Sequence record: NC_049383.1
DNA: 64,000 nt
Reading direction: 5' to 3' (one strand)
Shown here: piece after piece, positions 14,883 through 58,203 of the stretch
Numbering within the stretch: position 1 is the first letter of the stretch
How the letters are laid out: the number at the start of each line of letters is the position of its first letter
Notes under the pieces: model-generated
What the model saw: the letters and a program-made list of their open reading frames with translations, nothing else
What the model was told of the DNA's origin: nothing
The model's database searches: none
Position numbers and translations under genes: made by a program

Positions 14883-15290
14883 ATACTGATTATCAATATT
14901 CTACACTTTTTATTTTGTCCTTAAAAATAAATGTTAAAATTTTGTTAAAATTGTTAAAATCACATACATAAAATATTCAACATGACCAATTTTTTAACAT
15001 TTTAAATTATAATTTTAAGTAACTGATTTACAACGTTTTATAAGAATTTAACAAATTTCAGTATTTTGTTTAATTTTAAACAATTACACCCGAAAAATTT
15101 TTGACATATACAAAACTTACTGTAGCGACAATATTTTAACAATTTCTTTATCATATTCTCAATAAAACGCATTTTTCATTGAAAGAAAATCAGTAAAAAT
15201 ATACCTAGGTGCATTTTCTTTTATATATTATAAATACAAATAACATAAATAAAAGCGCGCGGAGATAGGTTTAAAAAATTCTTATAAAAA
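14883..15290. repeat. ~410-bp non-coding dispersed repeat, copy 1
   Basis: Manual alignment to 57795-58203 gives about 30 differences (~90% identity), same orientation. Confidence 0.95.
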
Positions 15291-15345
15291 CTATCTAAAA
15301 ATGATTTATTTTTATACATTTGTGATTTAATAAAACTTATAAATT

Positions 15346-15684
15346 ATGAATAGAAATTTTATACGTGATGAGATACTTTATGAATTATGTTTATTAAATG
15401 GTGGGAAACGAAAAATTGGAATAACAAATTGGATGAATATTTTAATTGTTGAAGAAACTGAAATGAAAAGAAAATATTCGATAGAATTTTCGACTGGTTA
15501 TAAATGTTTGGTTACAAAAGAGTATTCGATAAGTGGTAAAAACTTAAATAGTTCTAAAGATGATATTATATACCCACCAAGAGTAAATATTAATTTTTAT
15601 GTTGAAGTTGAAACACCAAAGGGTAAGAATGAGGATGATTTCTATAACTTCCTTACAAAAAATTTTGATAATATATTTATTTAA
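15346..15684 (+). CDS. Hypothetical protein
   Basis: 112 aa; TACATTTG element at 15315-15322. Confidence 0.7.
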   Translation: MNRNFIRDEILYELCLLNGGKRKIGITNWMNILIVEETEMKRKYSIEFSTGYKCLVTKEYSISGKNLNSSKDDIIYPPRVNINFYVEVETPKGKNEDDFYNFLTKNFDNIFI

Positions 15685-15722
15685 CGTATATTTGCATTTC
15701 AAACTAAAATTTATATAAGATT

Positions 15723-17276
15723 ATGCTTATAGACATTGTTCAACGAAAAGGGCGTGTTGAAGTTTCTTTTGTCGATAAAACAGGACAAATAGAATTAACA
15801 TCCATACCCACTACATTTGAGAATTGGGTTAAGTGTGATGAAGACGACCCACAAAAATCTAAAAAGTATCGAAACTGGACTGGTGAACCAGTTAAGAAGG
15901 TACATGATAGGGAATTTAAAGACTTGAATTTGCGTGAATTTTTATTACATAAAGTTCCGAAGGATATTCAAGAAAAGATTTTCGCTTATAATAAACCGAA
16001 TTGGTATGCTGTCGATATAGAGGTTGATGTTAGGAATTGTAATGGATTCCCTGAGCCAACAAAGGCTGAACACCCTATTTCAACAATTCAGGTAACAAAT
16101 CAACAACTTTCCACAGTTCTTTTGATTTTTGATGATATGAATCGTATTGAGGGAACACAGGAATATAAAGACTTTATTTCAGAAAGGGTTCGTAAACACT
16201 TTCAATCATCAAAAAAGGCACAAGATTTAATAAATAAGTATGCGAAGGATGGTGTTTTAAAATATGAACATATTGTTGTTAAGAGTGAGCGAGAATTATT
16301 AAAAGTTTATTTTGCTTTACAGAAAAAATCAATGCATCACATCATGGGTTGGAACTGGCTTGATTTCGATAGTCCTTATATTCATAAACGTGCTGTAAAA
16401 AATAATGTAAATCACTCAATGGCATCACCTGTTGGTGAGTTGGTGAATCGTGAAATATCTCGTGATAAGTTTGCTAAACATAAAGATTCAGAAAAGACAA
16501 AGGAAGATTTAGAACAAGAACGTAAGGAGCGAACATTTTCTACACCACGTCACAGAGTAGAAGTCGATTTGATGCAGGTTATAAATAAGTTCGATTATTC
16601 TATTGATAAAACATCATTAGCTTTAGATGCTATTGGATATCAAGCTGTTGATGTTCCGAAAATAAAGTATGATGGTAGTTTCCGTGATTTATTTTTAGAT
16701 ACAGATAATTTCCTTACATATTCGGCAGTAGATACGATTTTATTAATGATGGTTCACTTGCGTTTGAATACAATTACCTCATTGGAAATGGTTACATATT
16801 ATTCGAAAATTCCATTAGAGCGCGGATTTAGTACATTAGCTTTAGGTGATGCTATGTTTTGGGATGAACAATTTTCAAACGGATTGGTGTTTTGTCACGA
16901 AGATAGGTACTCAGATGATGATGATGGTGATACTGATTTTGAGGGTGGATATGTAATTAATCCTAGATATGCAACAGGTGAATGGGTTGCACTTGTTGAT
17001 TTTAAGTCGCTTTATCCAACTTGTGGTCAGTCTTTAGGTTGTTCTTTTGATAATATCATAAAAGAGAATGCTACGGATGAAGAAATAAAAGAGGCTATTA
17101 AACTTGGTCATAGAGTTTCAATGAATAGAACTATTTATGACAAAGATGATGATGGTACATTGACTCGTGTTTGGAATAGACTAATTTATGAGCGTTATCA
17201 CTTTAAGGATATTCGTTTATTTATTGATAATAAGATGCAACCAGTTATTAAAAAAATGATAGAAGCTCATGGATAA
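15723..17276 (+). CDS. Family-B DNA polymerase, N-terminal subunit (3'-5' exonuclease plus motif A; gp43A-like)
   Basis: ExoI VDIEVD, ExoII WNWLDFDSPYI, ExoIII YSAVD, motif A VDFKSLYP; ends in the fingers helix. Confidence 0.9.
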   Translation: MLIDIVQRKGRVEVSFVDKTGQIELTSIPTTFENWVKCDEDDPQKSKKYRNWTGEPVKKVHDREFKDLNLREFLLHKVPKDIQEKIFAYNKPNWYAVDIEVDVRNCNGFPEPTKAEHPISTIQVTNQQLSTVLLIFDDMNRIEGTQEYKDFISERVRKHFQSSKKAQDLINKYAKDGVLKYEHIVVKSERELLKVYFALQKKSMHHIMGWNWLDFDSPYIHKRAVKNNVNHSMASPVGELVNREISRDKFAKHKDSEKTKEDLEQERKERTFSTPRHRVEVDLMQVINKFDYSIDKTSLALDAIGYQAVDVPKIKYDGSFRDLFLDTDNFLTYSAVDTILLMMVHLRLNTITSLEMVTYYSKIPLERGFSTLALGDAMFWDEQFSNGLVFCHEDRYSDDDDGDTDFEGGYVINPRYATGEWVALVDFKSLYPTCGQSLGCSFDNIIKENATDEEIKEAIKLGHRVSMNRTIYDKDDDGTLTRVWNRLIYERYHFKDIRLFIDNKMQPVIKKMIEAHG

Positions 17277-17568
17277 GGATATAAAAGAATTTATAGAGAA
17301 GTTAAATAGATTAGATGGAACACAACCGTTTCATCTAATCTTTGATAGGTTAATTCAATTAAAAGATAATGAGAGTACCGAGAATACATTACAGTTCATT
17401 AATAACTTTGTTGATGCTAGAGGATTATTTGGAGAAAATAGAATAATTTCTTATCTTCGCGTAATATTAATAGTCTTCAAATCATTTAGGTATGATGAGG
17501 ATTGGAAAGAAACACTTAAAAATGTTCAAGATATAATTGAATCGGAAATGGGTGTAGAACTAAAATAG
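17269..17568 (+). CDS. Hypothetical protein nested in the split polymerase locus
   Basis: 99 aa; ATG overlaps the end of the upstream polymerase gene. Confidence 0.7.
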   Translation: MDKDIKEFIEKLNRLDGTQPFHLIFDRLIQLKDNESTENTLQFINNFVDARGLFGENRIISYLRVILIVFKSFRYDEDWKETLKNVQDIIESEMGVELK

Positions 17569-17590
17569 AACAAAATTAAATTTTAAGTAT

Positions 17591-18490
17591 ATGAGTAGAA
17601 AACTTATAGTAAAGGGTATAGACCCTTCAAATTTTATGAGATTGATTATAAAATCAGCACTTGTTAGAGATAAGAAAGGTGATAAAATCGCGGCTGAGTC
17701 TTTACCTCTTATGATTACTGGTGATAAAATCAAGTCTTTAAAAGAGACAAAAACTGAAACAACTTGTAAGTATTGGTATGAAGATTTAAGTCTTTTCTGT
17801 GAGAATGCCGATGAGGTAAAAGAAATTTTAGGGGATAATACTTGTAGAATTTGGCTTTTCAGTTGTAAAAGTTTAGTTTCGGGATGCTTGAAACATTTTA
17901 AAGAAAAGGTTAATTTAGAAATCATTTTAGATGATGGTAACTTTGATGCTGTTGAATATGTATCTATATTCAATGAGAGTGCTAAGATAAAATTTTCTGT
18001 TGGTGTTGCTTCTGCTACTTTTGATGAGTATGATGAAGAAGATTTGAATGATATTTTTGATGTATCTAGGGCTAAATGTTCATTTTCTTTATCTGATGAT
18101 GAATTAAAGAAGATTAAACAAGCATCTAAGATGGAATATATTTTAGGTAAATCACATGATGCTGTTTCATTTGTTGCTCGTGACGGTTCTTTATATTTCA
18201 AAACATTTACTGTTGAAATTAAATTACATGATACAGATGTTGAGTTCGATGAGTTTTACATTAAAAAAGATGTTATTGAAACTATTGATGCTGAGTCTCA
18301 CAATGTTTTTATAACCAACTGGAATAACACGGATTGTATTATTGTTAATTCTGTTGATTCTGATACATTCCAGTATATCGGTATCTTAAATAAATTCAAT
18401 ACATCTATTGATTTGGAAAGTGTTGAAGAAGAGATTGAAGCTGTTGATTATGCTAGTTTCGATGGTATGGATGAAAACCCATTATTCTAA
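17591..18490 (+). CDS. Probable sliding clamp (gp45/PCNA-like)
   Basis: 299 aa with two repeats of a beta-alpha-beta pattern; FSLSDDELKKIKQAS resembles the gp45 second-domain helix; acidic; lies between the polymerase halves. Confidence 0.6.
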   Translation: MSRKLIVKGIDPSNFMRLIIKSALVRDKKGDKIAAESLPLMITGDKIKSLKETKTETTCKYWYEDLSLFCENADEVKEILGDNTCRIWLFSCKSLVSGCLKHFKEKVNLEIILDDGNFDAVEYVSIFNESAKIKFSVGVASATFDEYDEEDLNDIFDVSRAKCSFSLSDDELKKIKQASKMEYILGKSHDAVSFVARDGSLYFKTFTVEIKLHDTDVEFDEFYIKKDVIETIDAESHNVFITNWNNTDCIIVNSVDSDTFQYIGILNKFNTSIDLESVEEEIEAVDYASFDGMDENPLF

Positions 18491-19902
18491 TGAGTGATGT
18501 TTTAGATATAGCTTTCAAGGCATTAGCTATTGATGAACATTTAATTACAACAAAAGGAAATTCGCCTGACCTCGCACCTGATTTATTTGATGCGAGGGTG
18601 GCGATTGAAAAAACATTTGTTGATTTATGTGAGCGTTTAGATAATGTTGATGAAATAAAGGATGATAAAAAGGCTTTAGAGATTTTGTATGATGATTTAC
18701 AGAATGCATCTATCTTTTATGATGCTACACAGTTATCCGCAAAAACTCTTGCAAATTCAATGTATGGATATGTTGGTGCGCCATTTTCTAGATACTATAA
18801 AAAGTGTGTTGCCGCTGACATTACAGCCGAAGGACGTAACGCTACAAAGATGGCAGATGTAAGAACCACTCAATATTTTGAATCACCTAAAGGATGGGCT
18901 AGTGAGACTGAATATTTCGAAAAGATTAAAGTTGAATTTGCTGATATTATTAATGTTGATAAGTTGACACCTGTAAAGGCATCTAACGGATTGGGTATTT
19001 ATGGTGATACGGATTCTGTATTCTTTATCATGAAGCCTATTTTGGATAGCTTGGGTGTTAAACCTGATGCTGATAGTTATCGTTGTACTGAATTATGTGT
19101 TAGTATAATTATGAATCCTGTTGATAAGATACATAAGGAGTTATTTAGAAGATATGCTGAGAATAGGAATTGTAAGAATTTACAAGTATTTGAATTAGAG
19201 GCTATTTTAAGGCGAACTATTCACCTTGCAAAGAAAAAGTATATTGGTTCGTATTTTTGGAAGGATGGTAAATTTTTAATTCCTAAAGATTTTGATTCGA
19301 TACCGAATGCTTATAAGAGTATTAAGTTAAAATCTACAGGTTTAGAGCTTGCCCAAAAATCGACACCAGTAATTATCAAGGAATATCTTAAAAAGTATGT
19401 TTATTTGATGTTGTCTAGTAAACAGGTTTCTGATGAGTTTTACTTTAAGATGGCTTACGCAATGACTAAAAGTTTTTCTGATATGCATATTGATGATTAT
19501 TCTAAAGCTAGGGCGTTGGGTACATTTAACAAGTATCATGATATAAAACCTAATGGTCAATATATAAAAACTGGTGGTGATAAAGTTATGGGTGCTTGTG
19601 TTCGTTATAATAATGAAGTGATAAATCACGGTTTAGAATCAAAATATCCGATGATTGCGCAAGGTTCAAGGGTTAAGTTTTATGAAGATATTAATCAACA
19701 AACATTTGCATATCCAATTGATGATAATTGTTCTTTTCCCGAAGAATTTGCACCACCACCACACATAAGGTTGAATTTGGAAAAGATGTTATTTAAACCA
19801 TTAGAAAGGATTATGTGTAAGGTTACCAATGCAGATTTGAGTATGTTGGGTTCACAACATTATCAAGTAACTAAATCTATTTTCAAGAAGAAAAAGTTAT
19901 AA
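18490..19902 (+). CDS. Family-B DNA polymerase, C-terminal subunit (gp43B-like)
   Basis: Motif B KTLANSMYG, motif C YGDTDS, KKKY and KSTGLE. Confidence 0.9.
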   Translation: MSDVLDIAFKALAIDEHLITTKGNSPDLAPDLFDARVAIEKTFVDLCERLDNVDEIKDDKKALEILYDDLQNASIFYDATQLSAKTLANSMYGYVGAPFSRYYKKCVAADITAEGRNATKMADVRTTQYFESPKGWASETEYFEKIKVEFADIINVDKLTPVKASNGLGIYGDTDSVFFIMKPILDSLGVKPDADSYRCTELCVSIIMNPVDKIHKELFRRYAENRNCKNLQVFELEAILRRTIHLAKKKYIGSYFWKDGKFLIPKDFDSIPNAYKSIKLKSTGLELAQKSTPVIIKEYLKKYVYLMLSSKQVSDEFYFKMAYAMTKSFSDMHIDDYSKARALGTFNKYHDIKPNGQYIKTGGDKVMGACVRYNNEVINHGLESKYPMIAQGSRVKFYEDINQQTFAYPIDDNCSFPEEFAPPPHIRLNLEKMLFKPLERIMCKVTNADLSMLGSQHYQVTKSIFKKKKL

Positions 19903-19932
19903 TTTATATTAAAACTATAAATAAACTGTATA

Positions 19933-19986
19933 ATATTGTTTGAAAGTCAAAGGTATTTTTTTATACTTTTGGCTTTCAAACAATAT
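19933..19986. other. 24-bp intergenic hairpin between two TATAAATA boxes
   Basis: atattgtttgaaagtcaaaggtat/atacttttggctttcaaacaatat (two G-U pairs); boxes at 19916-19923 and 19986-19993. Confidence 0.75.
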
Positions 19987-20056
19987 ATAAATAAACGACA
20001 AATTTATTTGTCATAAGTGTAAGAAGTTTCAAGATAAAATAAAATTCTAATCAAGT

Positions 20057-22867
20057 ATGAAAAATTTTCAAAGTTTTGTAGATAAGTTCGTTGGAGAATC
20101 ACAATTAGGTGAGAACTTATTACAATTAAAGCCTATGTCTTCAAAAGGGGCATTGTACAAAATTAATGCGCTTAAACACTTCAACGAATCTGTAATCGAC
20201 ATACATTACATTGTTAATGATTTAGTGGTAGAAGGTATGAAATTACAAAACACGGACAAAAGTGTTTTCCAATTCGCTGATAATTTAAGAAATATGATTG
20301 TTGAAAATGAGAATGCATTTAATATTGCATTTTTATTTGAATCAATTGAGAAGTCACCAAGAAAATCAGAGATTGATGAAAGAACTCAAAATATTATTGA
20401 GTCTATAATCTTAGAAGGTGAATTAAAAATCGGAGCATCTGTAATGACAGGTGAATTATCAAGAAGTAAATTCTATTATAATGATTTAAGAAACATCGAG
20501 CAAAGAATAATTGAGAGTAATGCATCTAAAATGAAAGATGTTGTTACTTCTGATTTCGAGATTTCGACACCAGTTTCTTACGTTTTTGAAACAGAGCAAG
20601 GAAAAATCGTTAGAGTTCAGAATGATGTATTTTTAGTAACAGAAAGTGAAATTATACCAACACAAGCACCATCACAAGAATTTGTTACAATTTCTGAGAA
20701 TGCTAAAAATTTAAAATATAACAAAGATGGTCAAACAGTTTTAGATACCGCTTTAGGAACATTAGTTTTAGAAGGTGAGTCTTTAAGTGTTATTGATAAA
20801 GAAGGTGTTATCAATGAGAGTTTAAATTCAAAAGAATCAATCTTAAATGAGTTTGCTTTCCAAGTAAACGAAATGGGATTGAATGAATCTGAGTTAACTA
20901 AATTGGATGCATTTGTTGTTATTTCTGAAAATAGCGAAAACTTTAAGAGTTTAGAAAACTTCAAAGTTTTAAAGAATTTCACAACTGGTGATATTGGTAT
21001 GATTGCAACTGTTGGTAAAAATGTATTTGGTTCTATTTTGGAATCACAAAGAGTTTTCAAAGGTTCTAAGAATTTCGAAAGTATTACAGAAGCTGTAAAC
21101 TTCATGAATGAGAAAATCGGAGTTGATGCAACGCCTATTTTTGAGGGGGAAATGAAGGATGAAAAAGAAAAAGAAGATACTAAAAATGCAAAGGTTGCTG
21201 AAATAGATGAAAGTATTGCTAAATTAGAAGCTACAAGAACTAAAGTAGAAGAAGCTATGAAAACCACTACAGAAGGTTCAGAAGCTCATACAAAGTATTT
21301 AGAAATGTCTTCACAAGTTAGTGAGGAAATGACTAAGTTAAAGAAGAAAAAGAATGAAGTTCTTAACTTCGAAGGTGAAGAGGAAGAAGATGAAGAAGAG
21401 CAAATGGAAGAGTCTAAATCAGTATCGAAAATGAAAGTAGATATGAAGTTGGTTAAACAAGCTTTAGACAACTTTAAAGGTTTACAAACTACTAAAGGTG
21501 ATTTATTTGATATTTCTTATTTCCCTGATTTCACGGATGATGTTGATAAAGGTTATATGACTGGTTTAATTGGTAAAGTTGACCCTAATAAAGTTGATTT
21601 GGGATATTCTAAGAAGGATAATTTCTTTAGAGTTGCTTTATTTGACTATAAATTCAAGTTAATAAAATCTATTGATGAGATTGATACTAAAGAATCTGAT
21701 GCTTTAAAGTTTATCGGTGAATCTGAGGAAGAGGAAGAGGAAGAGAAAACTACCTACATGAAGTGTAAGGAAGAGCGTGATAAAATGGTTGAAGAAGGTA
21801 TTAAGATGAATAACTTAGATTGGGGTAAATCAACTGAGGAAAGAAATAAAAATCTTGAAGCTTATGATAAGTTGAAAACTGATGAAGAAAGAGAAGCTTT
21901 CAAAAAGAAGTTAAAAGGTATCAACGAATCTAAAGGTGACCAAGAAGAGTACCAAAAATTCTTTAAGAAGATGTTAAAGAAATATGGTGTTGAAGAGCCT
22001 GACCAATTAAAAGATGAAGACAAAAAGAAATTCTATGAGGAAGTAGATAAAGGTTGGAAATCTGACAAAGAAGAGTGTGGTGTTGATGAGAGTAGAATGC
22101 AAGATAATCCATTTTATATAGAGTTAGAATCTTTAAAAGTTGGTACTATTGTTAAAGGTGGTGTTATAAAAAGCATGAAAGCTAAACTTAAAACATACAC
22201 AAAAGTTGGCGACAATAAATGGGAGCGCGAAGGTGATGGTAAAGTATTTGAAACATCTAATGTTTATGTTAGCATTGGTGGTACTAACGTAACCATCATA
22301 GGTAAAGATGATAAATCGGGAACTGCTAAAATAGATGATACGAAAATCACTTACATAAAAGAAGGTGAAGATGAAAAAGAAGGTGAAGAGGAAAAAAACC
22401 GTATCAAAAACGAACCTGTAAAAGAAGGTGAAGAATCACCTGCCGATAAAATCGATTCTGAGGAAGAGGAAGAGGAAAAAGATGAAGATGGTGGAAAGAA
22501 GGATAAAGGTGATGTTAAAGTAGAAGAGTCTAATAAAGGACAAAACGGTGTTATCAAATTTGCATTTGATGATGATGAAAATGTTTTTTATAGTGATGGT
22601 TATAAGACTAAAATTCAAGTTATGGATGGTTCTTTTGACTATAGAAAGAAAGCTTGGGTTGAACCTGATTTCGAATCGGATGATTGGGAATACTTAAAAA
22701 AGGACTATGCTAAACAATTAAACAAGCAAGTTAAAGGAAAAACTTTCGTTTATGATGATAGTATATTAGAGTCTGAATGTGATGAAAAAGAGGTTGAAGA
22801 GAGTTATAAAGCTATCTTAACCAAAGCTAAAAACATTAATGAGTCTATCGAAGCTCTTTTAAATTAA
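20057..22867 (+). CDS. Large prohead core/internal protein with many protease-site-like motifs
   Basis: About 30 [ILVFN]xE[SGNT]-type motifs, acidic stretches, CTS-like N-terminus MKNFQSFV, late promoter upstream. Confidence 0.55.
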   Translation: MKNFQSFVDKFVGESQLGENLLQLKPMSSKGALYKINALKHFNESVIDIHYIVNDLVVEGMKLQNTDKSVFQFADNLRNMIVENENAFNIAFLFESIEKSPRKSEIDERTQNIIESIILEGELKIGASVMTGELSRSKFYYNDLRNIEQRIIESNASKMKDVVTSDFEISTPVSYVFETEQGKIVRVQNDVFLVTESEIIPTQAPSQEFVTISENAKNLKYNKDGQTVLDTALGTLVLEGESLSVIDKEGVINESLNSKESILNEFAFQVNEMGLNESELTKLDAFVVISENSENFKSLENFKVLKNFTTGDIGMIATVGKNVFGSILESQRVFKGSKNFESITEAVNFMNEKIGVDATPIFEGEMKDEKEKEDTKNAKVAEIDESIAKLEATRTKVEEAMKTTTEGSEAHTKYLEMSSQVSEEMTKLKKKKNEVLNFEGEEEEDEEEQMEESKSVSKMKVDMKLVKQALDNFKGLQTTKGDLFDISYFPDFTDDVDKGYMTGLIGKVDPNKVDLGYSKKDNFFRVALFDYKFKLIKSIDEIDTKESDALKFIGESEEEEEEEKTTYMKCKEERDKMVEEGIKMNNLDWGKSTEERNKNLEAYDKLKTDEEREAFKKKLKGINESKGDQEEYQKFFKKMLKKYGVEEPDQLKDEDKKKFYEEVDKGWKSDKEECGVDESRMQDNPFYIELESLKVGTIVKGGVIKSMKAKLKTYTKVGDNKWEREGDGKVFETSNVYVSIGGTNVTIIGKDDKSGTAKIDDTKITYIKEGEDEKEGEEEKNRIKNEPVKEGEESPADKIDSEEEEEEKDEDGGKKDKGDVKVEESNKGQNGVIKFAFDDDENVFYSDGYKTKIQVMDGSFDYRKKAWVEPDFESDDWEYLKKDYAKQLNKQVKGKTFVYDDSILESECDEKEVEESYKAILTKAKNINESIEALLN

Positions 22868-22876
22868 TAACAAATC

Positions 22877-22903
22877 AAAAGGGTGTTTTTATAACACCCT
22901 TTT
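22877..22903 (+). terminator. Intrinsic terminator
   Basis: aaaagggtgtt/aacaccctttt plus T-run. Confidence 0.75.
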
Positions 22904-22922
22904 TTAATAACATATACAAAGA

Positions 22923-24401: not shown

Positions 24402-24761
24402 ATGACTAAAAAACAACCAGTTCCAAAGGATGAATTTAATGAAGAGATTCTTAAATCTAAAGCACAAGGTAGATTAACAGAACGAGCAGGACAACTTATT
24501 TTCAAGTTAGTTTCATATTATCAAGATACAAATGAATCAATGAAATATGATAGTGAAGATATAAAGCAGGATGTTAGAAGTGTTGCATTAACAATTATTT
24601 GTGAAAAGTGGTATAAATTCAATGAAAAAGAGTATAATAATGCATTTTCTTATTTTACTACAATGGCTAGAAATGGTCTTATGGAAGGTATGAATCGTCA
24701 TACTAGAAATAAAAATAATTCGGTACTGCGTTATGATACTGTATTCGATGAATCTGTTTAG
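24402..24761 (+). CDS. Late-transcription sigma factor (T4 gp55-like)
   Basis: YDSEDIKQD...KFNEKEYNNAFSYFTTMARNG matches the gp55 Y..D......FD.....NPFAYFTQI pattern. Confidence 0.8.
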   Translation: MTKKQPVPKDEFNEEILKSKAQGRLTERAGQLIFKLVSYYQDTNESMKYDSEDIKQDVRSVALTIICEKWYKFNEKEYNNAFSYFTTMARNGLMEGMNRHTRNKNNSVLRYDTVFDESV

Positions 24762-29173: not shown

Positions 29174-29233
29174 TATTTTTTGTCTTCAAACAATAAATAA
29201 ACTAAGAATGAAAAGTAAATAACAGAATATTTT

Positions 29234-49360: not shown

Positions 49361-49361
49361 T

Positions 49362-50057: not shown

Positions 50058-50786
50058 ATGAAAGAAACAAACTCATATCATATACCATACGATAAATTGA
50101 AAGACCATGCGAGAGGTGGTGTAGTAATTTATAATGGTATTTTTTACAAAATTAAATACTTAGACGATAAAACATTTTCTGCTTATAAAGGTAAAGAAAC
50201 ATTTGAAGGTAGAAATATGCACTTACACCCTTATGGGAAAAGTAAGAACGGAACTATCGTTAATTTTGGTCAAGAACTACCTTTTTTCATGTATAACCAA
50301 AATCAAAATAGAAAAGATGTTCCAAAGGAAGAAATTAACGGAACTGATTTTGATAAAGTTAAAACAGATTCATATTTAGGTTTACTTAGAGCAAACTTGA
50401 CAACACATATCGTTCAATATAATGAAAAAGATGGTGGATTCGTTGTTTTTGATGATGGTAATAATGTTTTTCTTAAATTAAGAAATGGAAAAAATATCAC
50501 TTTACCAAAGAAAAATTTACACTATGTTAAAAATCATTATGTGAAAGGTAAATATAAAAAGCTTTGGTTCAAATATGACCCTAAAAAGGAATTACCAATG
50601 CAAGTTCAACAATTACCAGTTAAAGGCGATGCATATAAAGAATACTTAGAATTAAAGGCTAAATTTGACCCTGATTACCAAAGAACTGATGATTATAGAG
50701 TGTATAAATCTCAACAGGCAATACATGATAAAATGAAAAGACTTTGGGAAAAATTAACACCAAAACAGAAAAAGAAAGTAGCATAA
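50058..50786 (+). CDS. Hypothetical protein
   Basis: Start moved to 50058, after TATATTTG at 50046-50053. Confidence 0.7.
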   Translation: MKETNSYHIPYDKLKDHARGGVVIYNGIFYKIKYLDDKTFSAYKGKETFEGRNMHLHPYGKSKNGTIVNFGQELPFFMYNQNQNRKDVPKEEINGTDFDKVKTDSYLGLLRANLTTHIVQYNEKDGGFVVFDDGNNVFLKLRNGKNITLPKKNLHYVKNHYVKGKYKKLWFKYDPKKELPMQVQQLPVKGDAYKEYLELKAKFDPDYQRTDDYRVYKSQQAIHDKMKRLWEKLTPKQKKKVA

Positions 50787-50787
50787 A

Positions 50788-51582
50788 ATGAAAATATTTA
50801 ATAAAGATTTAGAAACATATATTAGCGAAAACCTAAAATCTACAATGACTATTGAAGAAATAGTTAATCAAAATCATGGAGAAGTTAGTATATATGTTGA
50901 CCGTGGAATGAAAGGTTTTAAAAATGATATTGATAAAGCAATATCATTAGTTCCAAAATCTGCTGTTCCTAACATCATTGCACCATTAAACGCTAAAACA
51001 TATAATGATATGATTGGTTATAAACTTGACCCTCGTATGAAAATGGCTTTCGGTGTTACTTTCCAATCAGATGATGTTATTATACCAATGCAGTATGCAA
51101 CAGATTTCATTAAGGATGAAGCTAGAAAAATGTCATTATATAAGAATGATTTAGATGGTTGGAATAGAGTTTTAGAAATCAAAAAAGATATTAGAGTCTA
51201 TTCGAAATCATTTAAGAAAAATGTTTTCCAAGTATGTCTTTTTAACCCAAAGTATAAAAATTCTAAGGGTATGACTGTAGCAAAAAAGGATTTAAACGAT
51301 AAATATATTAGTAAGCATGGTGTTCGTAGAACTGTTACTGAAACTGCTTTAGGTGTTATTGTTCATGAGTTTGGTCACGTTTATGATAGTAGAAATAAAG
51401 TTTCTAAAAGTTCGGGATGGTCTGAAATACACATGAAATGGAAACATTTAAAAGATTGTCCGTTATACATTAAAGAAAGTGCATCGGAAGCATTCTCAGA
51501 AGCTTTTGCAAACTACTTTATTGATAAAGGAAAAGATTTACCCGATTTCGTTTTAGAATATTGTAAAAAGAATTTTAAATAG
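50788..51582 (+). CDS. HEXXH zincin metallopeptidase (lethal-factor/polyvalent type)
   Basis: VIVHEFGHVYD ... SEAFSEAF; N-terminus LETYISEN. Confidence 0.7.
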   Translation: MKIFNKDLETYISENLKSTMTIEEIVNQNHGEVSIYVDRGMKGFKNDIDKAISLVPKSAVPNIIAPLNAKTYNDMIGYKLDPRMKMAFGVTFQSDDVIIPMQYATDFIKDEARKMSLYKNDLDGWNRVLEIKKDIRVYSKSFKKNVFQVCLFNPKYKNSKGMTVAKKDLNDKYISKHGVRRTVTETALGVIVHEFGHVYDSRNKVSKSSGWSEIHMKWKHLKDCPLYIKESASEAFSEAFANYFIDKGKDLPDFVLEYCKKNFK

Positions 51583-51797
51583 GAGTCAAGCAAGAGACAC
51601 AAAATAATTGAAACGTAGTTGATAGATTGAGTATCATTCGCGTATGACTCCAAAATATACCAACGCTAGGACACGTTGTATAGTCGCTTGTTAATGCAAT
51701 ATAAAAGTTATTGCAAGAACTTTTGTTAGTCACTATTCGTGCCGTTGGAATGTAAATCCCGACAAGGTTAAAACCCACTCTTTAAAGAGTGGGTTTT
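51582..51797 (+). ncRNA. Candidate structured RNA in a 3' intergenic region ending in a terminator
   Basis: GC-richer than flanks; stems ggagtca/tgactcc, caacg/cgttg, tgcaata/tattgca, gttgg/ccgac; perfect palindrome 51770-51797. Confidence 0.45.
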
Positions 51798-51901
51798 TTA
51801 TTGCGAATATGAAAAAATTAAAAATATTTTTAAATAATTATAACGATTAAATAAAATATTATAGTATATTTGTATTACACTTAGAAATAAAAACAAATAG
51901 T

Positions 51902-52246
51902 ATGAATAATTTAAAATTTAAAACACCTGATAAAAACAATAAGACTTATACAGAAGCACTTAAAACTGTTTTTAGTGAGCTTGTGGATATTGATACTAAA
52001 TATGTTGATATAAAGCCTAAAAAGACCCTTAAAATAGCTTATTATATGGTTATTTCTGATATTATGGTGATATCACTAGTTAATGGTTGTGAATTATTAT
52101 TATCGTATGGTGATGATATTGTTTGTATAGATGATAAAACTTATTATGGATGTACTGGTGGTGATTTCGAACTTATAAATTTAAATCCCGATTTTGTTAA
52201 AATTAATAGTGATTTTGAGAATGGTGTAATTTTTAAAAATAAATAA
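51902..52246 (+). CDS. Hypothetical protein
   Basis: 114 aa; TATATTTG at 51865-51872. Confidence 0.7.
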   Translation: MNNLKFKTPDKNNKTYTEALKTVFSELVDIDTKYVDIKPKKTLKIAYYMVISDIMVISLVNGCELLLSYGDDIVCIDDKTYYGCTGGDFELINLNPDFVKINSDFENGVIFKNK

Positions 52247-52254
52247 AATAAATT

Positions 52255-52557
52255 ATGAACGAACTTATTTTTAACCTTATGGTTGAACTTACTACATATG
52301 GTATTCAACCAAAAATGTGTAGAGATTTTGAGAATATTCTCTATATTGATTTAGATACTTATGCAAAATCACACTTATATCTTTACTTAGATGGTAAAAT
52401 AGTAGGTCGATATGAATACACATATCAGCTTGATTTGTCTAAAAGTATCAATGATTTACTTGTAGATTTAGGTGAAGAGTTTAAGAAATCAACTCATGGG
52501 AGAGGTGGGAATGATGCATGGTTTAATCTATGTCAACAATTAGGTATTAACATTTAA
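52255..52557 (+). CDS. Hypothetical protein
   Basis: 100-aa ORF. Confidence 0.7.
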   Translation: MNELIFNLMVELTTYGIQPKMCRDFENILYIDLDTYAKSHLYLYLDGKIVGRYEYTYQLDLSKSINDLLVDLGEEFKKSTHGRGGNDAWFNLCQQLGINI

Positions 52558-52568
52558 AACAAATAAAT

Positions 52569-53126
52569 ATGTGGCAAGGAATTAAAAGAGAAGACTATAA
52601 ATTAATAGTTGAATCAAGACAATTAGCATTTAGTGCGCACGACCGTTGGACTAATCATGATTATAAAAAAGGCGTTGGATATTCTTATCACCTGCAAATG
52701 GCTGTTGATTTTGGTATCATGTTCTTACACCTTTTAGAACCCGAAGAAAGAGCTATTGCTATTTCAGGTATTTACTTACATGATGCTGTAGAAGATGTTC
52801 GTTTAACCAAAAATGACATAATCAAGTCAATAGAAAATAAAAGAGTGGCACAATTATCATGTAATATGTGTTGTGATATTTGGGGTGGAACTCGTGATGA
52901 AAGAAATTCACCAAGCTACTATAAAAGAGTTAATAGCGATAAACTTAGTGTTTATGGTAAACTATGTGATAGAATGGCTAATATTACTGAATCTATATTA
53001 ACTAAAGGTGAACCGACTGATTTTTATATCGATGAAATGGAAGATTTCTTATCTAAATTAGATATTGATAAAAATGGTTTCCAAGAAATGAGTTTATATC
53101 TTAAAGAAATTGCAGGATTTCATTAA
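52569..53126 (+). CDS. HD-domain small alarmone hydrolase-like protein (SpoT/Mesh1 family)
   Basis: AFSAH, YSYHL, LHDAVED, KLCDRMAN. Confidence 0.8.
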   Translation: MWQGIKREDYKLIVESRQLAFSAHDRWTNHDYKKGVGYSYHLQMAVDFGIMFLHLLEPEERAIAISGIYLHDAVEDVRLTKNDIIKSIENKRVAQLSCNMCCDIWGGTRDERNSPSYYKRVNSDKLSVYGKLCDRMANITESILTKGEPTDFYIDEMEDFLSKLDIDKNGFQEMSLYLKEIAGFH

Positions 53127-53236
53127 ATAGGTTGATAAGAATGTTAAATTTTGAAAGTTTTTTAGATTTGCTATTGTAAAACTAAAAAACTTTCATATAT
53201 TTGTAGTGTATTTATTAAACATCAAAACAAAACATT

Positions 53237-53515
53237 ATGTCAATCGCAAGAGAAATTTTAACAGTAATCGAGAAAACAAACCAAATCGCATTAGTTGTAG
53301 CAGATGAACACACAATCGGTTATATTGTTCCTGAATGTCCTAATAAATTTCTAGTATTAAGACCAAATTTAGGTTCTTGGATGAAAGATGGTAGTGCAAC
53401 TACTTTAGATAATATCAGTGAATTAAGATTATTAGAAACTAAAGATTTCGAAGAGTATAAACTATGTGGTGAAGGTTACATAAGAGACACTACAAATTAC
53501 TATTTTAATAGATAA
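53237..53515 (+). CDS. Hypothetical protein
   Basis: 92 aa; TATATTTG at 53196-53203. Confidence 0.7.
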   Translation: MSIAREILTVIEKTNQIALVVADEHTIGYIVPECPNKFLVLRPNLGSWMKDGSATTLDNISELRLLETKDFEEYKLCGEGYIRDTTNYYFNR

Positions 53516-53597
53516 TAAAAAATAAAGTTAGATTTCCTTTGTTGGAAGTCTAACTTTTCTTATATTTACAAAGAATTTAATATTAATTAAAAACAAA

Positions 53598-53912
53598 ATG
53601 GAAAAATTAAATCTAATGGGTGTCGAAAGACCATTGAAAACTAGGTGTAAAATCAAGGAATTTGTTAGTTGTATGGTTTTCGAAGGAAATAAACTACCTA
53701 GAAAAGCAAAGAAAAAGTATTTAAAAACATATAATAGAGACACATACCGTAATATAATATTTCTAAACAAAATTAAAGATGAAATGTTAAAAGGCATTCC
53801 ATTAAAGTTTCAGTTACCCGCAGGAATTGGTAAAACAAATATGATATTGAATAATATTATATTTGGTGTAACCCCTAAAATTACTCACAATCCTATAACA
53901 ATTTTACCATAA
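53598..53912 (+). CDS. Hypothetical basic protein
   Basis: 104 aa; TAATG overlap with the next gene. Confidence 0.6.
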   Translation: MEKLNLMGVERPLKTRCKIKEFVSCMVFEGNKLPRKAKKKYLKTYNRDTYRNIIFLNKIKDEMLKGIPLKFQLPAGIGKTNMILNNIIFGVTPKITHNPITILP

Positions 53913-54895
53913 TGAGAACAAAAGAAGAAATAAAGTTAGCTGAATTAACACTTCAAAAGTGTTTAGAAAATGTTCAACGATTTAGTATGTTTGGTGATGA
54001 TAATCATGAACAAATTAATGCAGGTCTTAGGATTTTGCGCGACCCTTCACCAATGTATAAACTTGATGAAGAGCTTACATATTATGAAGATGAAATTGAT
54101 GATATGGCAACAGCAACTTTCATACTTTCGTTAGGTGAATGGTTTGATGGAAATGAGGAACTTGTTGATATTATTTGGGGTGAAGAAAATTTAGTAACTT
54201 CATTAGAAGATGAACCAAAAAATAAAGTTCCAGTTGTTTGTGTTAAGTTGTGTAAAGATTGTCCGTTCTCAAAAACATCTTTAAAAGGATTTTTAGCTGA
54301 TTATGAAGTAGATGATTTCACTAGAATGATGAGTGCAAATTTTTCATTCCCATGTCATAAAAACGTTAAAGATGATATGACTTTAGAAGCTGTTCAACAA
54401 AAGATTAACAATTCCGAAATGTTTCATTGTAGAGGTTATATTGAATCATTCATAAAATCGGGTAGAACTGGGTATGGTAATCCAAAGTTACAGGAAGCAA
54501 TAGATGAGGTTAAGAAGCAAGGTCTTAGTGATAATTCAATGTCTGATTATGAGTTCAAATATCACCACGATTATATTTATATGGTTGATACTTGTATCAA
54601 GAAAGAAACAGATTTTACACTATTCTCAGAATCTGTTTATAAATCATATTCACCAAAATCTTTTTCAATTGATGAAGTTGCTGAGAGATTACAAAAGATT
54701 TGTTTAAAAGGTCATGGACTAGAGATTATGGGTGAAGTTCGTCATTATATTAGTGGGAGTTTTTACAATAGATGTATTGGTGAACAGGATTATAAAAGTA
54801 TTATTAGGAAATTTCATAAAGGATGTGTAAATCTTAACATTGATGAAATTTATGAATTAAGTATTAATACTTTAAAATTAGCAAAATATGAATAA
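53912..54895 (+). CDS. Modular protein with Cys/His metal-binding domain (DUF6283-like)
   Basis: CKDCPF...FPCHK...HCRG. Confidence 0.45.
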   Translation: MRTKEEIKLAELTLQKCLENVQRFSMFGDDNHEQINAGLRILRDPSPMYKLDEELTYYEDEIDDMATATFILSLGEWFDGNEELVDIIWGEENLVTSLEDEPKNKVPVVCVKLCKDCPFSKTSLKGFLADYEVDDFTRMMSANFSFPCHKNVKDDMTLEAVQQKINNSEMFHCRGYIESFIKSGRTGYGNPKLQEAIDEVKKQGLSDNSMSDYEFKYHHDYIYMVDTCIKKETDFTLFSESVYKSYSPKSFSIDEVAERLQKICLKGHGLEIMGEVRHYISGSFYNRCIGEQDYKSIIRKFHKGCVNLNIDEIYELSINTLKLAKYE

Positions 54896-54913
54896 CAATT
54901 AAGTAAATAAAAT

Positions 54914-55258
54914 ATGGAAAAAACATTATTTCAGAGAGTAAGACAGAATTTAATAAATAGTGGTCTTTTAAAAGAGGAATCAACACATTTAGAAATAGAA
55001 GCATTGGTTGTATCTATTCTAGATACAACATCTAACCCAAGCGGATTATCAGAAGCTGTTCAATTAGAACGTATGGTTAATGATAGAAAAATGCCTCATG
55101 ATAAAAAGTTTGAACATAATAATTATACATTGGATGATATGTTTAATATGGTTAATTATGGTCATGATTATGTTCTTAAATGTCAAACAAAAGGGTTTGT
55201 TCCGAAAGGAAATATTCTGCAACATATTGAATATTTAGAGTCTAAGAAAGACGATTAA
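54914..55258 (+). CDS. Hypothetical protein
   Basis: 114-aa ORF. Confidence 0.7.
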   Translation: MEKTLFQRVRQNLINSGLLKEESTHLEIEALVVSILDTTSNPSGLSEAVQLERMVNDRKMPHDKKFEHNNYTLDDMFNMVNYGHDYVLKCQTKGFVPKGNILQHIEYLESKKDD

Positions 55259-55285
55259 TTATATCTTTTTACATATAATTTTAAT

Positions 55286-55331
55286 AAAAATCCTGAAACT
55301 ATACTTTTTTGCATATAGTTTCAGGATTTTT
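55286..55331 (+). terminator. Intrinsic terminator, 18-bp stem
   Basis: aaaaatcctgaaactata/tatagtttcaggattttt. Confidence 0.8.
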
Positions 55332-55415
55332 GAGTTAGAACAATATATATAATAAACAATTTTTATTCATTAGAGACTGGATTTAAACAAGTCTTTATTT
55401 TTAATTTACACTTAT

Positions 55416-55862
55416 ATGAGAATAGAACAATATTTAACAGAATGTTTGGTTACAGAATCAATGGCATCAAATAACGCATCAGTAAAAATAGAGAAACTTT
55501 TAAAAACACTTAATTTAAACCATGATAAAGGTGGTTTTGAACCATTCGGAAAAGATGGAAAGGCTATGTTTTTAACTGTTATGAAGGAAGTAATTAATGG
55601 AGTTTTTGATGATATAAATTATTCAGATTTGAAAGATTTGAATAAAGGACTATTCGGAAAAGATTCTACAAAAATAGAAGATGCTAAGAATAAAAATTTC
55701 ATGAAAAAAGCAGTTCTGATTGACTCTGAAATCCAAAAAGTTGTACATTCTATATCAAAAATTGTTAAGTGGGATGCTGTAGTTTTTGTAGAGGCTATGA
55801 ATCAATACTTACAAAGCCAAGGATTTAATTTAAAATTAATACACGAAAAACAAGATAAATAA
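55416..55862 (+). CDS. Putative internal head protein
   Basis: MRIEQYLTECLVTES N-terminus. Confidence 0.5.
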   Translation: MRIEQYLTECLVTESMASNNASVKIEKLLKTLNLNHDKGGFEPFGKDGKAMFLTVMKEVINGVFDDINYSDLKDLNKGLFGKDSTKIEDAKNKNFMKKAVLIDSEIQKVVHSISKIVKWDAVVFVEAMNQYLQSQGFNLKLIHEKQDK

Positions 55863-56485
55863 TGAAAAGTATTTTAGAATATGTTACCGAGTCTAGAAAT
55901 AAAACGGTAAAAGCAGATTTAGGACACTCTAATATGGGTGGTTGGGATTCTATTTATAACAAATCGAAAATGGAAAATGGTGATTATCAATATGTTGCAT
56001 TGATTTCACCTACTACTGGTGAGATTAATTGGCGTGGTGTTTTCAAAGATACCGAGGGTAAGAATTTGGATAAAGCGTCATATGATTATATCATGAAGGT
56101 TTCAAACAAATATGCTAAGAAAAACAAGAACTTAAAGAAAGTTGAGAAGAGGGTTAAGGATATTTTCAAGGCTAAGAAGCCTGTAAAAGTTCAATATCCC
56201 GAAGGGAAGGTTAAGGATGCTGTTATCGATAATGGTCGATTAGTTTTTATTGAAAATGGTATTGGTTTGTTTTCTCATTCAATTAATGATGTTATTGAAC
56301 TTGTTGCTAAAAAATCTTACGATATAGTTGAGTCTGTTAATGAATCAAAAGAAACAGATTTTGTTGTGGGTCAACCATTTATGTATGGCAATTTCGCAAC
56401 AACTGTTGTTAGTGTTACAGAAACAACAGTTGAATTAGATGCAGATGGTGAGATTTTCGAAGCTAAAATCGAAGATTTATTTTAA
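55862..56485 (+). CDS. Putative internal head protein
   Basis: MKSILEYVTES N-terminus; internal IVESVNES. Confidence 0.55.
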   Translation: MKSILEYVTESRNKTVKADLGHSNMGGWDSIYNKSKMENGDYQYVALISPTTGEINWRGVFKDTEGKNLDKASYDYIMKVSNKYAKKNKNLKKVEKRVKDIFKAKKPVKVQYPEGKVKDAVIDNGRLVFIENGIGLFSHSINDVIELVAKKSYDIVESVNESKETDFVVGQPFMYGNFATTVVSVTETTVELDADGEIFEAKIEDLF

Positions 56486-56541
56486 TAACTAATTTTTAAT
56501 ACTTATATTTGATGAGTATTAAATAAGAATAAAAATTTATA

Positions 56542-57660
56542 ATGAAAGTAGGTAAACAAGCAAAGGATTTATCGGCAAAAGTAGGGTCGAAAATTGGAAA
56601 TATTACAAATGCAGAATCCGCATTAAAAAAGTTAAAAAAAGAACGTAAAGATACAATTTTAGGATATGCTAAACAGTATATCGATAAAATAAATGAAAAT
56701 CAGTATGTTAAGGCTAAATTAGATGTACATGAGCAAGATTATACAAGAATGTATATTGATATCGATAATAGTGGTTATGGTGGTGCTATTATAATGAATC
56801 ACGGTTATTCATCTATTGATATGGGTGATGTATTCAGAACAGTTGTAAATGTTAGTCTTTCGGGATATTCTAAAGAGGTTATAGACCCAATAATCGAATA
56901 CCCTATATATGGAGAAAAGAAAGTTTCTAATGAGAAAATGGGAGCTACATTAGAAAAGGTTTCAATAATCGCAAAAGAATTATCACAATTATATTGGATT
57001 ATGAACGGTTTCATTCTTTATAAAGAGGTTGAGAAAGAAGTAAAACAATTAGATAAAGAAATTGAAAATATCGAAAGTTTAGCAACATCAAACCCATATG
57101 TTGAACAATATGGTTTAGCAGAGGTTGTAGCTAATGAAGCTATAGCACACGCATTCAAACAAAAGAATTTCAAATTCCAACCTAAGAAATTTAGTGATTT
57201 AGTAAAAGATATCAAGAAAAATAAAGGATTCTATTTTACCCAAGGTGGTAATGGTAGTGGTGATATGTTCGGTTTATCTTGGCGTTATAACTCTATGGGT
57301 GATAATCAATCAGCTTGGGAACAAATGGTTATGGATATTGTAAATGTTGATACTCGTTTAAGTGAAGGTGATGTTATTTTACCAGTATTTGTAGAAAAAG
57401 GTGGTTTATACTCTGATATGATGAGTGAATTTAAAATCGAATCTAAAGGAAAAAACTTCAAAGGTGTTGCTAAATCTGCTTCTAGTGATGAAGTTAAATT
57501 ATCTAAAAAGTTATTATCAGCAAAGCCTAGAAAAGAAGTTTATTTATCTTCAACTAAAAACGATGTTTCAGATGTTTTCATACATAAAGGAGCATTCATT
57601 CTTTTATTAGCGTTATTCACTAATGAAATGGACGAATATAAAAAACTTTTCATTAACTAA
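56542..57660 (+). CDS. Hypothetical protein
   Basis: 372-aa ORF with N-terminal coiled coil. Confidence 0.7.
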   Translation: MKVGKQAKDLSAKVGSKIGNITNAESALKKLKKERKDTILGYAKQYIDKINENQYVKAKLDVHEQDYTRMYIDIDNSGYGGAIIMNHGYSSIDMGDVFRTVVNVSLSGYSKEVIDPIIEYPIYGEKKVSNEKMGATLEKVSIIAKELSQLYWIMNGFILYKEVEKEVKQLDKEIENIESLATSNPYVEQYGLAEVVANEAIAHAFKQKNFKFQPKKFSDLVKDIKKNKGFYFTQGGNGSGDMFGLSWRYNSMGDNQSAWEQMVMDIVNVDTRLSEGDVILPVFVEKGGLYSDMMSEFKIESKGKNFKGVAKSASSDEVKLSKKLLSAKPRKEVYLSSTKNDVSDVFIHKGAFILLLALFTNEMDEYKKLFIN

Positions 57661-57687
57661 AAGAAAAATTTTTATAAATTATACTAT

Positions 57688-57725
57688 AAAAAAGACCAAA
57701 ATTCGAAAGAGTTTTGGTCTTTTTT
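57688..57725 (+). terminator. Intrinsic terminator with GAAA loop
   Basis: aaaaaagaccaaaattc-gaaa-gagttttggtctttttt. Confidence 0.85.
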
Positions 57726-57794
57726 ATTATCAGATTTAACAGATATTTGGCTAATTTTCGTCTTAAACATAATTTTATTAATTTTATTCATAAT

Positions 57795-58203
57795 ATACTG
57801 ATTATCAATATTCTACACTTTTTATTTTTGTACTTAAAATAAATGTTAAAAATTTTGTTAAAAATGTTAAAATTACATACGTAAAATATTCGACATGACA
57901 AATTTTTTAACATTTTCGATTACAATTTTAAGTAACTGATTTACAACGTTTTATAAGAATTTAACAAATTTATGAATTTTGTTAAATTTTAAACAATTAC
58001 ACCCGAAAAATTTTCGACATATACAAACCTTGCTGTAGAGACAATATTTTAACAAATTCTTTGAAAGATTCTCAATAAAACGAATTTTTCGTTTAAAGAA
58101 AATCAGTAAAAATGTACCTAGGTGCATTTTCTTTTATATATTATAAATACAAATAAAATAAATAAAAGCGCGCGGAGAGAGGTTTAAAAAATTCTTATAA
58201 AAA
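57795..58203. repeat. ~410-bp non-coding dispersed repeat, copy 2
   Basis: Direct repeat of 14883-15290. Confidence 0.95.

Follow-up and report, generated by a model that had tools for sequence, protein, structure and literature searches.

A seven-copy non-coding repeat at transcription-unit boundaries of jumbo phage pT24, possibly a promoter/operator cassette with a T4-late-type box

Why does a non-coding sequence of some 410 bp occur twice, 42.9 kb apart, among unrelated genes of a large phage genome? The question arose from a sequence-only reading of a stretch of 64,000 nucleotides (the window), which corresponds to record 124001-188000 of Tenacibaculum phage pT24 (NC_049383 / LC168164), a jumbo myovirus of 234,670 bp and 28.7% G+C. 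That reading described a duplicated element and put it forward as a candidate multi-copy replication origin. Comparison of the whole genome with itself shows a family of seven copies rather than a duplication, and we tentatively interpret the element as a lineage-specific, cis-acting promoter/operator cassette that would work at the DNA level, with a T4-late-type promoter and with arrays of TGTTAA motifs as accessory sites. We favour this interpretation because pT24 encodes a late-sigma homologue, because the most conserved part of the element has a promoter-sized footprint and because the promoters of this phage appear to fall into classes; we give it somewhat less than half of our belief.

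The two copies in the window are direct repeats. In the BLAST alignment they extend over window 14879-15330 and 57791-58245, with 90.0% identity in 458 columns; within the slightly narrower limits first reported (14883-15290 and 57795-58203) the estimate of about 30 differences is close to the 31 that we count (379 matches, 28 mismatches and 3 gap positions). The genome-wide BLASTn search for copy number that had been proposed gives seven copies. Four of them, of 410-450 bp each, form family A: copy 1 (record 138879-139330, + strand) and copy 2 (record 181791-182245, + strand), both full length, and two on the - strand at record 60294-60742 (the 60k copy) and 79524-79931 (the 79k copy). Family B has two copies of 395 bp that are 95% identical to one another, at record 118979-119371 (119k, - strand) and 211278-211670 (211k, + strand). 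A short copy of ~200 bp lies at record 19100-19299 (19k, - strand). Upstream of the shared core, the arms of families A and B have no detectable homology (local alignment z = 1.2-2.2 against shuffles).

Common to all seven copies is a core of 151 nt (gacatatRcaaac ... cataaataaa), at 15103-15253 in copy 1 and 58016-58166 in copy 2 (both +). Conservation is concentrated in its 3' 51 nt (15203-15253 and 58116-58166, +), a near-invariant block that runs from ACCTAGGT through TATAAATA to CATAAATAAA. Only 2 of these 51 columns vary among the seven copies, against 24 of the 100 other core positions (Fisher P = 0.0013), and adjacent sequence diverges by 6-17%. Moreover, the block is identical across the subfamilies while their flanks differ in a structured way, which suggests that purifying selection acts on it at each locus, and that it is not a single conversion tract. 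A 16-bp palindrome stands at 15199-15214 in copy 1 (ATATACCTAGGTGCAT, +) and at 58112-58127 in copy 2 (ATGTACCTAGGTGCAT, +). The palindromic ACCTAGGT that had been noticed is present in both copies and, within the pT24 genome, is confined to the seven members of the family; matches to it in the outgroup L032 lie within coding sequence and were set aside as chance. The TATAAATA box, reported at 15229 and 58142, is found at both positions (15229-15236 and 58142-58149, +) and exactly in all seven copies, with a second box, CATAAATA, 15 nt downstream (15244-15251, +, in copy 1). If the first box sits at -13 to -6, the predicted start is at ~15242 in copy 1 and ~58155 in copy 2.

The sequence-only reading had drawn attention to another part of the element, a 48-nt block invariant between the two copies. 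This block is exact (15011-15058 = 57924-57971, the longest exact match between them) and recurs in a third copy, but it is specific to one subfamily, the block conserved in all seven being the 3' 51 nt. An IHF-like site had also been proposed, and it fell away, since the same one-mismatch pattern occurs every 216 bp in this genome, which is chance level. The clustered motifs in both orientations were borne out. Copy 1 has three direct TGTTAAAA motifs with spacings of 11 and 9 bp (14932-14959, +) and an inverted TTTTAACA (14992-14999), with TTAACA also at 15048 and 15136; in copy 2 the three direct motifs have spacings of 12 and 9 bp (57844-57872, +) and the inverted one is at 57905-57912. Although the arms of the two families cannot be aligned, nowhere in the genome are TGTTAA arrays denser than at the six long copies, which hold the only 300-bp windows of the genome with at least six TGTTAA/TTAACA motifs. 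Phasing of A-tracts in the arms was unconvincing (P=0.03-0.22). Family A further has ~45 nt without G and then a GC clamp; its tail, with the GC island AGCGCGCGGAG, lies at 15254-15298 (+) in copy 1. The GC island described for both copies is indeed in each, but is limited to the four long family-A copies.

In T4, gp55 reads the late consensus TATAAATA (or NATAAATA) at -13 to -6 (PMC1524935). pT24 has been named among the group-2 jumbo phages, which lack an RNA polymerase of their own and use phage sigma factors with the host polymerase (Iyer et al., PMC7824862). A gp55-like late sigma factor of pT24 is gp171 (24402-24761, +), a protein of 119 amino acids annotated as hypothetical, which matches PHROG 234 (E=5.2e-7); a direct phmmer match of T4 gp55 to it is weak (E=0.07). 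Its gene is preceded by a conserved TTGTTATATTA motif in pT24 and in the closest relative. The search for gp33 gave a best match of E=0.012 without PHROG support, and a clamp loader is encoded. The promoter that the sequence-only reading saw in the element is plausible in its TATAAATA box, because pT24 encodes this gp55-like sigma factor, but the box does not match the phage's own late-class consensus.

The Bacteroidota -7 box has the consensus TAnnTTTG (PMC7641319). In pT24 the host-type box TATATTTG is the most enriched 8-mer among those present in many upstream regions (33 genes against 3.3 expected), and the host-type -7 box peaks 21-40 nt before start codons. Promoters of this type are depleted before structural genes (4/25 against 51/102, P=0.003), and ATAAATA is among the most enriched 7-mers there (P = 0.02, uncorrected). 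Together, this depletion and this enrichment support a division of pT24 promoter usage into classes. A late-like motif containing ATAAATAA is conserved at orthologous junctions of pT24 and the relative. Two classes of motif resemble promoters but are not of the host type. Class L1 is aaTTGTTATATTAa (extended -10-like), found before gp144, gp163, gp171 and gp180, with examples at window 14742 (-), 24365 (+) and 35765 (+); class L2 is caaAC[AT]ATAAATAAa (T4-late-like), found before gp178, gp182, gp195 and gp282, with examples at 29190 (+), 36911 (+) and 48878 (+). In both classes the sites precede start codons by 19-39 nt, and pT24 shares them with the relative at orthologous junctions.

According to the promoter/operator interpretation, the 51-nt block would be a promoter-sized module reaching from about -39 to +12, in which the TATAAATA box, together with the second CATAAATA 15 nt on, would be read by host RNA polymerase with gp171. 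With its centre at about -35.5, the 16-bp palindrome would function as operator or as activator site, and the upstream arm, with its TGTTAA/TTAACA motifs 9-12 bp apart, would bind an accessory protein. Such a cassette would have spread, in the lineage of pT24 alone, to seven boundaries between transcription units, and would add a second, phage-controlled transcriptional input, late or replication-coupled, to seven operons. Promoter activity, protein binding and timing are all inferred here from sequence.

Several observations weigh against this interpretation. With the position matrices of the phage's own classes, the boxes of the element score 5-9 bits and true pT24 sites 11-23 bits, the L2 matrix having been trained on eight sites; the boxes share the ATAAATA core with L2 but lack its CAAAC flank, and across the genome TATAAATA shows no enrichment (89 occurrences against 122 expected). 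Since 8 bp are enough for a T4-type late promoter, such a promoter does not by itself account for conservation over 51-450 bp. Most of the downstream operons consist of replication genes or nucleotide genes, for which host-type early promoters are already in place, and close relatives manage without the element. Searches among the pT24 proteins identified no sequence-specific DNA-binding protein and no clear gp33 homologue. In addition, the even spacing of the copies, described below, is not predicted by a purely transcriptional role.

All seven copies are intergenic, in unusually long gaps (525-847 bp), and each has the next gene's own promoter downstream of it. Where the gap is co-directional, in five cases, the order is upstream intrinsic terminator, arm, core, variable spacer and the downstream gene's own promoter; four of these terminators were called by an exact-stem scan and the fifth (119k) by eye, its long loop having escaped the scan. 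The copy points in the direction of the downstream operon in all five gaps where this can be judged (binomial P=0.03); it cannot be judged in the two divergent ones. Copy 1 is in a divergent gap of 643 bp between gp163 (-) and gp164 (+), and copy 2 in a gap of 627 bp between gp208 and gp209, the dihydrofolate reductase (DHFR) gene. Upstream of copy 2 and outside the repeat lies the intrinsic terminator of gp208 (57690-57731, +), which shows that copy 2 should be insulated from upstream transcription.

The downstream gene's own promoter is a TAnnTTTG -7 box in six of the seven cases. For gp164 this is TACATTTG (15315-15322, +), outside the repeat, 23 nt before the ATG at 15346 and homologous to the promoter in the 58-bp junction of the closest relative; for gp209 it is TATATTTG (58258-58265, +), again outside the repeat, with the ATG at 58288. 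The remaining gene, gp144, uses a second conserved motif, TTGTTATATTAA. Dependence of gp144 on the TATAAATA of the element was considered and rejected, as the gene has a conserved L1 promoter of its own.

The downstream operons encode an SbcCD-like metallophosphoesterase, a clamp loader, a helicase, a DNA-end protector with the portal, a split family-B DNA polymerase, DHFR and an RNA ligase, and most of them belong to DNA metabolism. The siting of copy 1 upstream of a DNA polymerase operon agrees with our annotation, the operon being that of the split enzyme. Its exonuclease part is at 15723-17276 and its polymerase part at 18490-19902, with two small open reading frames (ORFs) between, an arrangement also present in relatives and in some T4-like phages. 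The gene contexts of the copies are unrelated, as had been noticed for the first two, and the mutually unrelated flanking genes ruled out a gene cassette.

Gaps between successive copies measure 41.3, 19.2, 39.4, 20.2, 42.9, 29.5 and 42.2 kb. Relative to random intergenic placement the copies are over-dispersed, with P = 0.006 for the minimum gap of 19.2 kb and P = 0.002 for the coefficient of variation, in a test that was post hoc. Because of this even spacing, which is not expected from a purely transcriptional model, replication origins stay a rival. The copies could be multi-copy origins, or enhancer/origin modules like the homologous regions (hrs) of baculoviruses, at which a phage or host factor would bind palindrome and arrays, the AT-rich stretch behind the palindrome would unwind and a transcript from TATAAATA would prime or activate initiation; seven evenly spaced starts would then share the copying of the 235-kb genome. 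The motif arrays at roughly helical spacing, the unique palindrome and, in family A, the G-free stretch before the GC clamp would suit such a role, as would the orientation of the copies, which flips with the two gene arms. We nevertheless hold it to be unlikely. The cumulative GC-skew minimum, for which a check had been suggested, is at record ~123 kb, where the gene strand switches, away from every copy, and the skew follows gene strand. A Pfam survey of the 263 pT24 proteins found no Rep, HUH, primase-type or other initiator family. The arrays that the sequence-only reading likened to iterons are statistically unusual, but the motif TGTTAA(AA) has only 6-8 bp, not the 17-22 bp of an iteron, and no cognate initiator gene goes with it. 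An origin need not be strictly co-oriented with genes, and since the element is absent at three syntenic junctions of the closest relative, a conserved system of origins would need to have been invented recently. With the IHF site at chance level as well, we found nothing that specifically supports the origin first proposed.

Among known origins, T4 oriF and oriG (a middle promoter with an unwinding element) and lambda ori resemble the element in having a promoter-like box, an AT-rich stretch and short motifs helically spaced upstream. However, T4 origins are not repeats of each other, whereas the pT24 copies are, and the element differs from the T4 and lambda origins in the points just given, namely initiator gene, skew signal, conservation in relatives and motif length. 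Baculovirus hrs act as enhancers and, in assays, as origins, and they promote recombination. Like them, the pT24 copies are dispersed, AT-rich, non-coding homologous regions with an imperfect palindrome, centred on a restriction site, in a large double-stranded DNA genome; unlike them, they belong to a bacteriophage and have one palindrome per copy, where hrs are tandem arrays of palindromes binding viral IE1. By this analogy, the family might be a phage counterpart of the hrs, combining factor-bound enhancers or late promoters of DNA-metabolism operons with replication starts, or with clamp-loading entry points that would couple late transcription to replication, and driving large inversions, which we consider quite unlikely.

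Related phages indicate the age of the family. The closest relative (73% DNA-polymerase identity) is contig JAHDBD010000006.1 (231,974 bp) of GCA_020630575.1, uncultured and found through a large protein database, which is collinear with pT24 from gp140 to gp208. In the 76 kb of it that were examined there is no trace of the element, no intergenic gap above ~310 bp and no dispersed repeat. Its junction upstream of the polymerase operon (copy 1) has 58 bp against 643 bp in pT24, that between gp145 and gp144 (119k copy) 77 bp against 543 bp, and that following gp208, which corresponds to copy 2 and the 19k copy, 175 bp against 627 and 847 bp. At the polymerase junction, two further lineages with 69-70% polymerase identity have 92 and 3 bp, and the cultured phage PTm1 has 45 bp. 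The element is missing there in four related lineages (3-92 bp against 643 bp) and is therefore not an ancestral origin of the phage group. It is absent from all related phage contigs examined, and the 50 kb of PTm1 examined hold only short terminator-promoter cassettes; the conservation in relatives that the sequence-only reading proposed to check is lacking at syntenic junctions. Since the element is missing in relatives, the family is, on this comparison, a recent acquisition or expansion in the pT24 lineage and not ancestral to the phage group. At its outer edges the copy-1 gap still shows homology to the 58-bp junction of the relative, and the downstream TAnnTTTG promoter is part of this homology, so that, by alignment, ~540 bp is inserted there between two divergent promoters.

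As for a host-derived or widespread element, 185,579 prokaryotic genomes gave no match, and the IMG/VR match was pT24 itself only; two metagenome matches were chance 22-mers within unrelated coding DNA. Just upstream of copy 1, at 14822-14878, two tandem 20-nt hairpin-forming units (attccRcttttatggaata) lie within the inserted DNA and outside the repeat family. They give a sub-threshold chance match to a microRNA model.

Lineage specificity, with each tested copy an insertion relative to the relatives, would also fit a selfish or neutral non-autonomous repeat, spread by illegitimate or homologous recombination where terminators and promoters meet, as has been proposed for the PeSL cassettes introduced below, or by a mobilising enzyme, and without phage function beyond rearrangements. 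In accordance with this, copies are found only at transcription-unit boundaries, where insertions are tolerated, their ends are ragged, and two of them lie at a synteny breakpoint. One copy (211k) is divergently adjoined by gp270 (record 210893-211216, -), which encodes a truncated T5orf172/MUG113 protein of 107 amino acids with a GIY-YIG-like, homing-endonuclease-type domain, and is the sole mobility-related gene detected in the Pfam survey. We still judge such a repeat quite improbable. The copies have neither common terminal inverted repeats nor target-site duplications, and the survey found no transposase (threshold E<=1e-4), recombinase, resolvase/invertase or integrase; on this sequence evidence the element is not a classical transposon, and with its unrelated flanking genes it is not a gene cassette either. 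The 51-nt block, near-invariant amid diverging neighbours, argues for selection at each locus, and the orientation bias and even spacing would go unexplained.

The breakpoint concerns copy 2 and the 19k copy. In the relative, the gp208 homologue is directly followed by homologues of gp19, gp17, gp16 and gp13 on the same strand, the junction being L031 12264-12438. In pT24, gp208 precedes copy 2, and the gp19-gp13 genes are encoded by the opposite strand, a short way downstream of the 19k copy. Both pT24 breakpoints lie within element-bearing gaps (57661-58287; record 18812-19658), with REARRANGEMENT at the two copies, which are mutually inverted. This is the pattern expected from recombination between them, and it is consistent with a ~72-kb inversion across the record ends, which the genome authors joined by polymerase chain reaction. 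Since 7 of the 124 intergenic gaps hold an element, the chance that a random pair of breakpoints falls in such gaps is ~0.003 by our own arithmetic. In one outgroup, homologues of gp205 and gp206 precede the gp19 homologue by ~5 kb and share its strand, which suggests that the relative's gene order is ancestral, although these regions are mosaic and the evidence is weak. The reciprocal junction was not retrieved: a search with DHFR gave no homologue in the relative, and a contig scan with gp100 was empty. For a promoter/operator cassette such events would be a by-product, the dispersed homologies of 150-450 bp serving as recombination substrates. In the relative, the 377-amino-acid gene that precedes the gp208 homologue contains a 290-bp tandem duplication with 99% identity (L029 19671-20239 = L031 10571-11139).

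Invertible promoters are common in Bacteroidota, and in family A of this Bacteroidota-infecting phage a promoter-like segment is bracketed by a 14-nt inverted repeat. In copy 1 its halves are TTTTATAAGAATTT (15036-15049) and AAATTCTTATAAAA (15276-15289), enclosing 226 nt with the core, the invariant block and the GC island; in copy 2 they are at 57949-57962 and 58189-58202, and in both copies they are perfect. All four family-A copies have it, three perfectly and one with 13/14 positions, which exceeds chance (P=0.007). A host recombinase could flip this 226-bp promoter-bearing segment, or the palindrome itself, two 7-bp half-sites around TA that we take to resemble hix/gix sites, could be the place of crossover. 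Crossover there would explain the large inversion, and the rearrangement breakpoints do coincide with two inverted copies. Site-specific recombination of either kind seems to us very improbable. No serine or tyrosine recombinase is among the 263 phage proteins, the bracket is absent from the two family-B copies and from the 19k copy, the assembly shows every copy in one and the same state with no evidence of both orientations, and homologous recombination between repeats of 150-450 bp suffices for the inversion.

Can the element be coding, or act as RNA? The lack of an ORF that the sequence-only reading reported holds, also under amber suppression: every frame has at least three TAA codons, so that an amber-suppressor tRNA (anticodon CUA) cannot open a frame. 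There is no 3-nt periodicity at variable sites (P=0.48), and a reverse-strand mini-ORF (MHLGTF...) was rejected, as it hits a stop at codon 12-13 in four of the seven copies. pT24 itself encodes an amber-suppressor-type tRNA with anticodon CUA (called tRNA-Pyl by ARAGORN) at record 191520-191594 (L004 41520-41594), together with two 80-nt tRNA-Ile(UAU). TAG terminates 38 of 299 called genes, and some late genes might consequently be recoded at this codon.

The copies are co-oriented with transcription, as a small non-coding RNA gene in several copies or a conserved RNA leader would be, and a transcript could end at the palindrome, after which comes a T-run. The helix of the palindrome moreover contains a U-G wobble that in 6/7 copies pairs only on the sense strand. 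The other results make an RNA product highly improbable. No host-type TAnnTTTG promoter is conserved inside the element on either strand; E. coli-type sigma-70 promoters, also considered, were at shuffle level in copy 1 and are irrelevant for Bacteroidota. The covariation check that had been proposed, run here with RNAalifold, gave terms of +0.35 and +0.04 kcal/mol, no covariation on either strand and no convincing compensatory pairs. Folding z-scores range from -4.4 to +0.2 between copies, and Rfam gave no match at gathering or permissive thresholds. The hairpin aaacga/tcgttt is intact only in copy 2, as described before, and neither its disruption nor a 5-nt block substitution is compensated. 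The palindrome, with 2 G-C pairs in most copies, was not called as a terminator by the scan, and the most conserved sequence lies downstream of its hairpin. The preference for a DNA-level over an RNA-level role is supported by these data.

A promoter/operator cassette of this kind has a counterpart in the PeSLs (promoter-early stem-loops), mobile regulatory cassettes of T4-type phages (Arbiol et al. 2010, PMC2839356; Comeau et al. 2014, PMC4122927). Both are multi-copy non-coding cassettes at transcription-unit boundaries, oriented with transcription and tied to modular rearrangement, pT24 being a T4-related myovirus. The pT24 element, however, is far longer (150-450 bp), lacks an internal host-type early promoter, forms only a weak hairpin and combines an invariant block of 51 nt with a unique palindrome and a late-type box; its copies are evenly spaced, whereas PeSLs are clustered in hyperplastic regions. 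The element thus joins the dispersed regulatory and recombinogenic cassettes known from T4-type phages, among which it is unusual in length, in its invariant module of palindrome and late box, in even spacing and in lineage restriction. PeSL-like cassettes proper, a terminator hairpin followed by a TAnnTTTG box, are also present in pT24, at window 7195-7290, 53148-53235 and 59640-59735 and near record 6.3k, 62.9k, 195.1k and 196.0k, and in PTm1.

T4 late promoters consist of TATAAATA, which gp55 reads together with gp33 and the sliding clamp. The likeness of the pT24 element lies in the exact TATAAATA of every copy, in the gp55-like sigma factor and clamp loader of the phage and in the ATAAATA motif before its structural genes. 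The T4 promoter, however, is 8 bp without an upstream site, where pT24 has 51 invariant nt with a palindrome over -35; the box lacks the CAAAC flank of the phage's own late-like class, and no clear gp33 homologue was detected.

In jumbo phages outside the phiKZ group, the organisation of replication and the switch from early to late expression are largely unknown, and Bacteroidota phages are almost untested. pT24 offers seven easily mutated cis sites in a cultivable phage-host pair, with the 232-kb relative that lacks the element (76 kb examined) as a natural control. The element could reveal a phage-specific regulator and its operator, the late-promoter architecture of a Bacteroidota phage, or replication from multiple origins; should it turn out to be selfish, phage genomes would be found to contain a non-autonomous repeat of a new kind. 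In any case, this is a jumbo phage in which a large rearrangement of the genome coincides with dispersed non-coding repeats.

Some observations were made in passing. The idea that CCTAGG is avoided in pT24 and kept only in the element was dropped, for 31 of the 64 six-bp palindromes are absent genome-wide (for example ACATGT, AGATCT and GAATTC, with ~78 expected of each) and CCTAGG ranks 32nd of 64. Restriction sites are strongly avoided in this genome, with no GATC (614 expected), no CCGG (100) and one GGCC (100), and the 232-kb relative likewise avoids GATC, CCGG and GGCC, plus CGCG. One protein encoded between record 133478 and 191399 has a weak match to Pfam PF07737 (E=1.7e-5), a family named after the N-/C-terminal domain of anthrax lethal factor; it is probably a metallopeptidase-like domain of the polyvalent-protein type. 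The same Pfam batch holds an ART-PolyVal protein, and the neighbouring batch an SprT-like protein.

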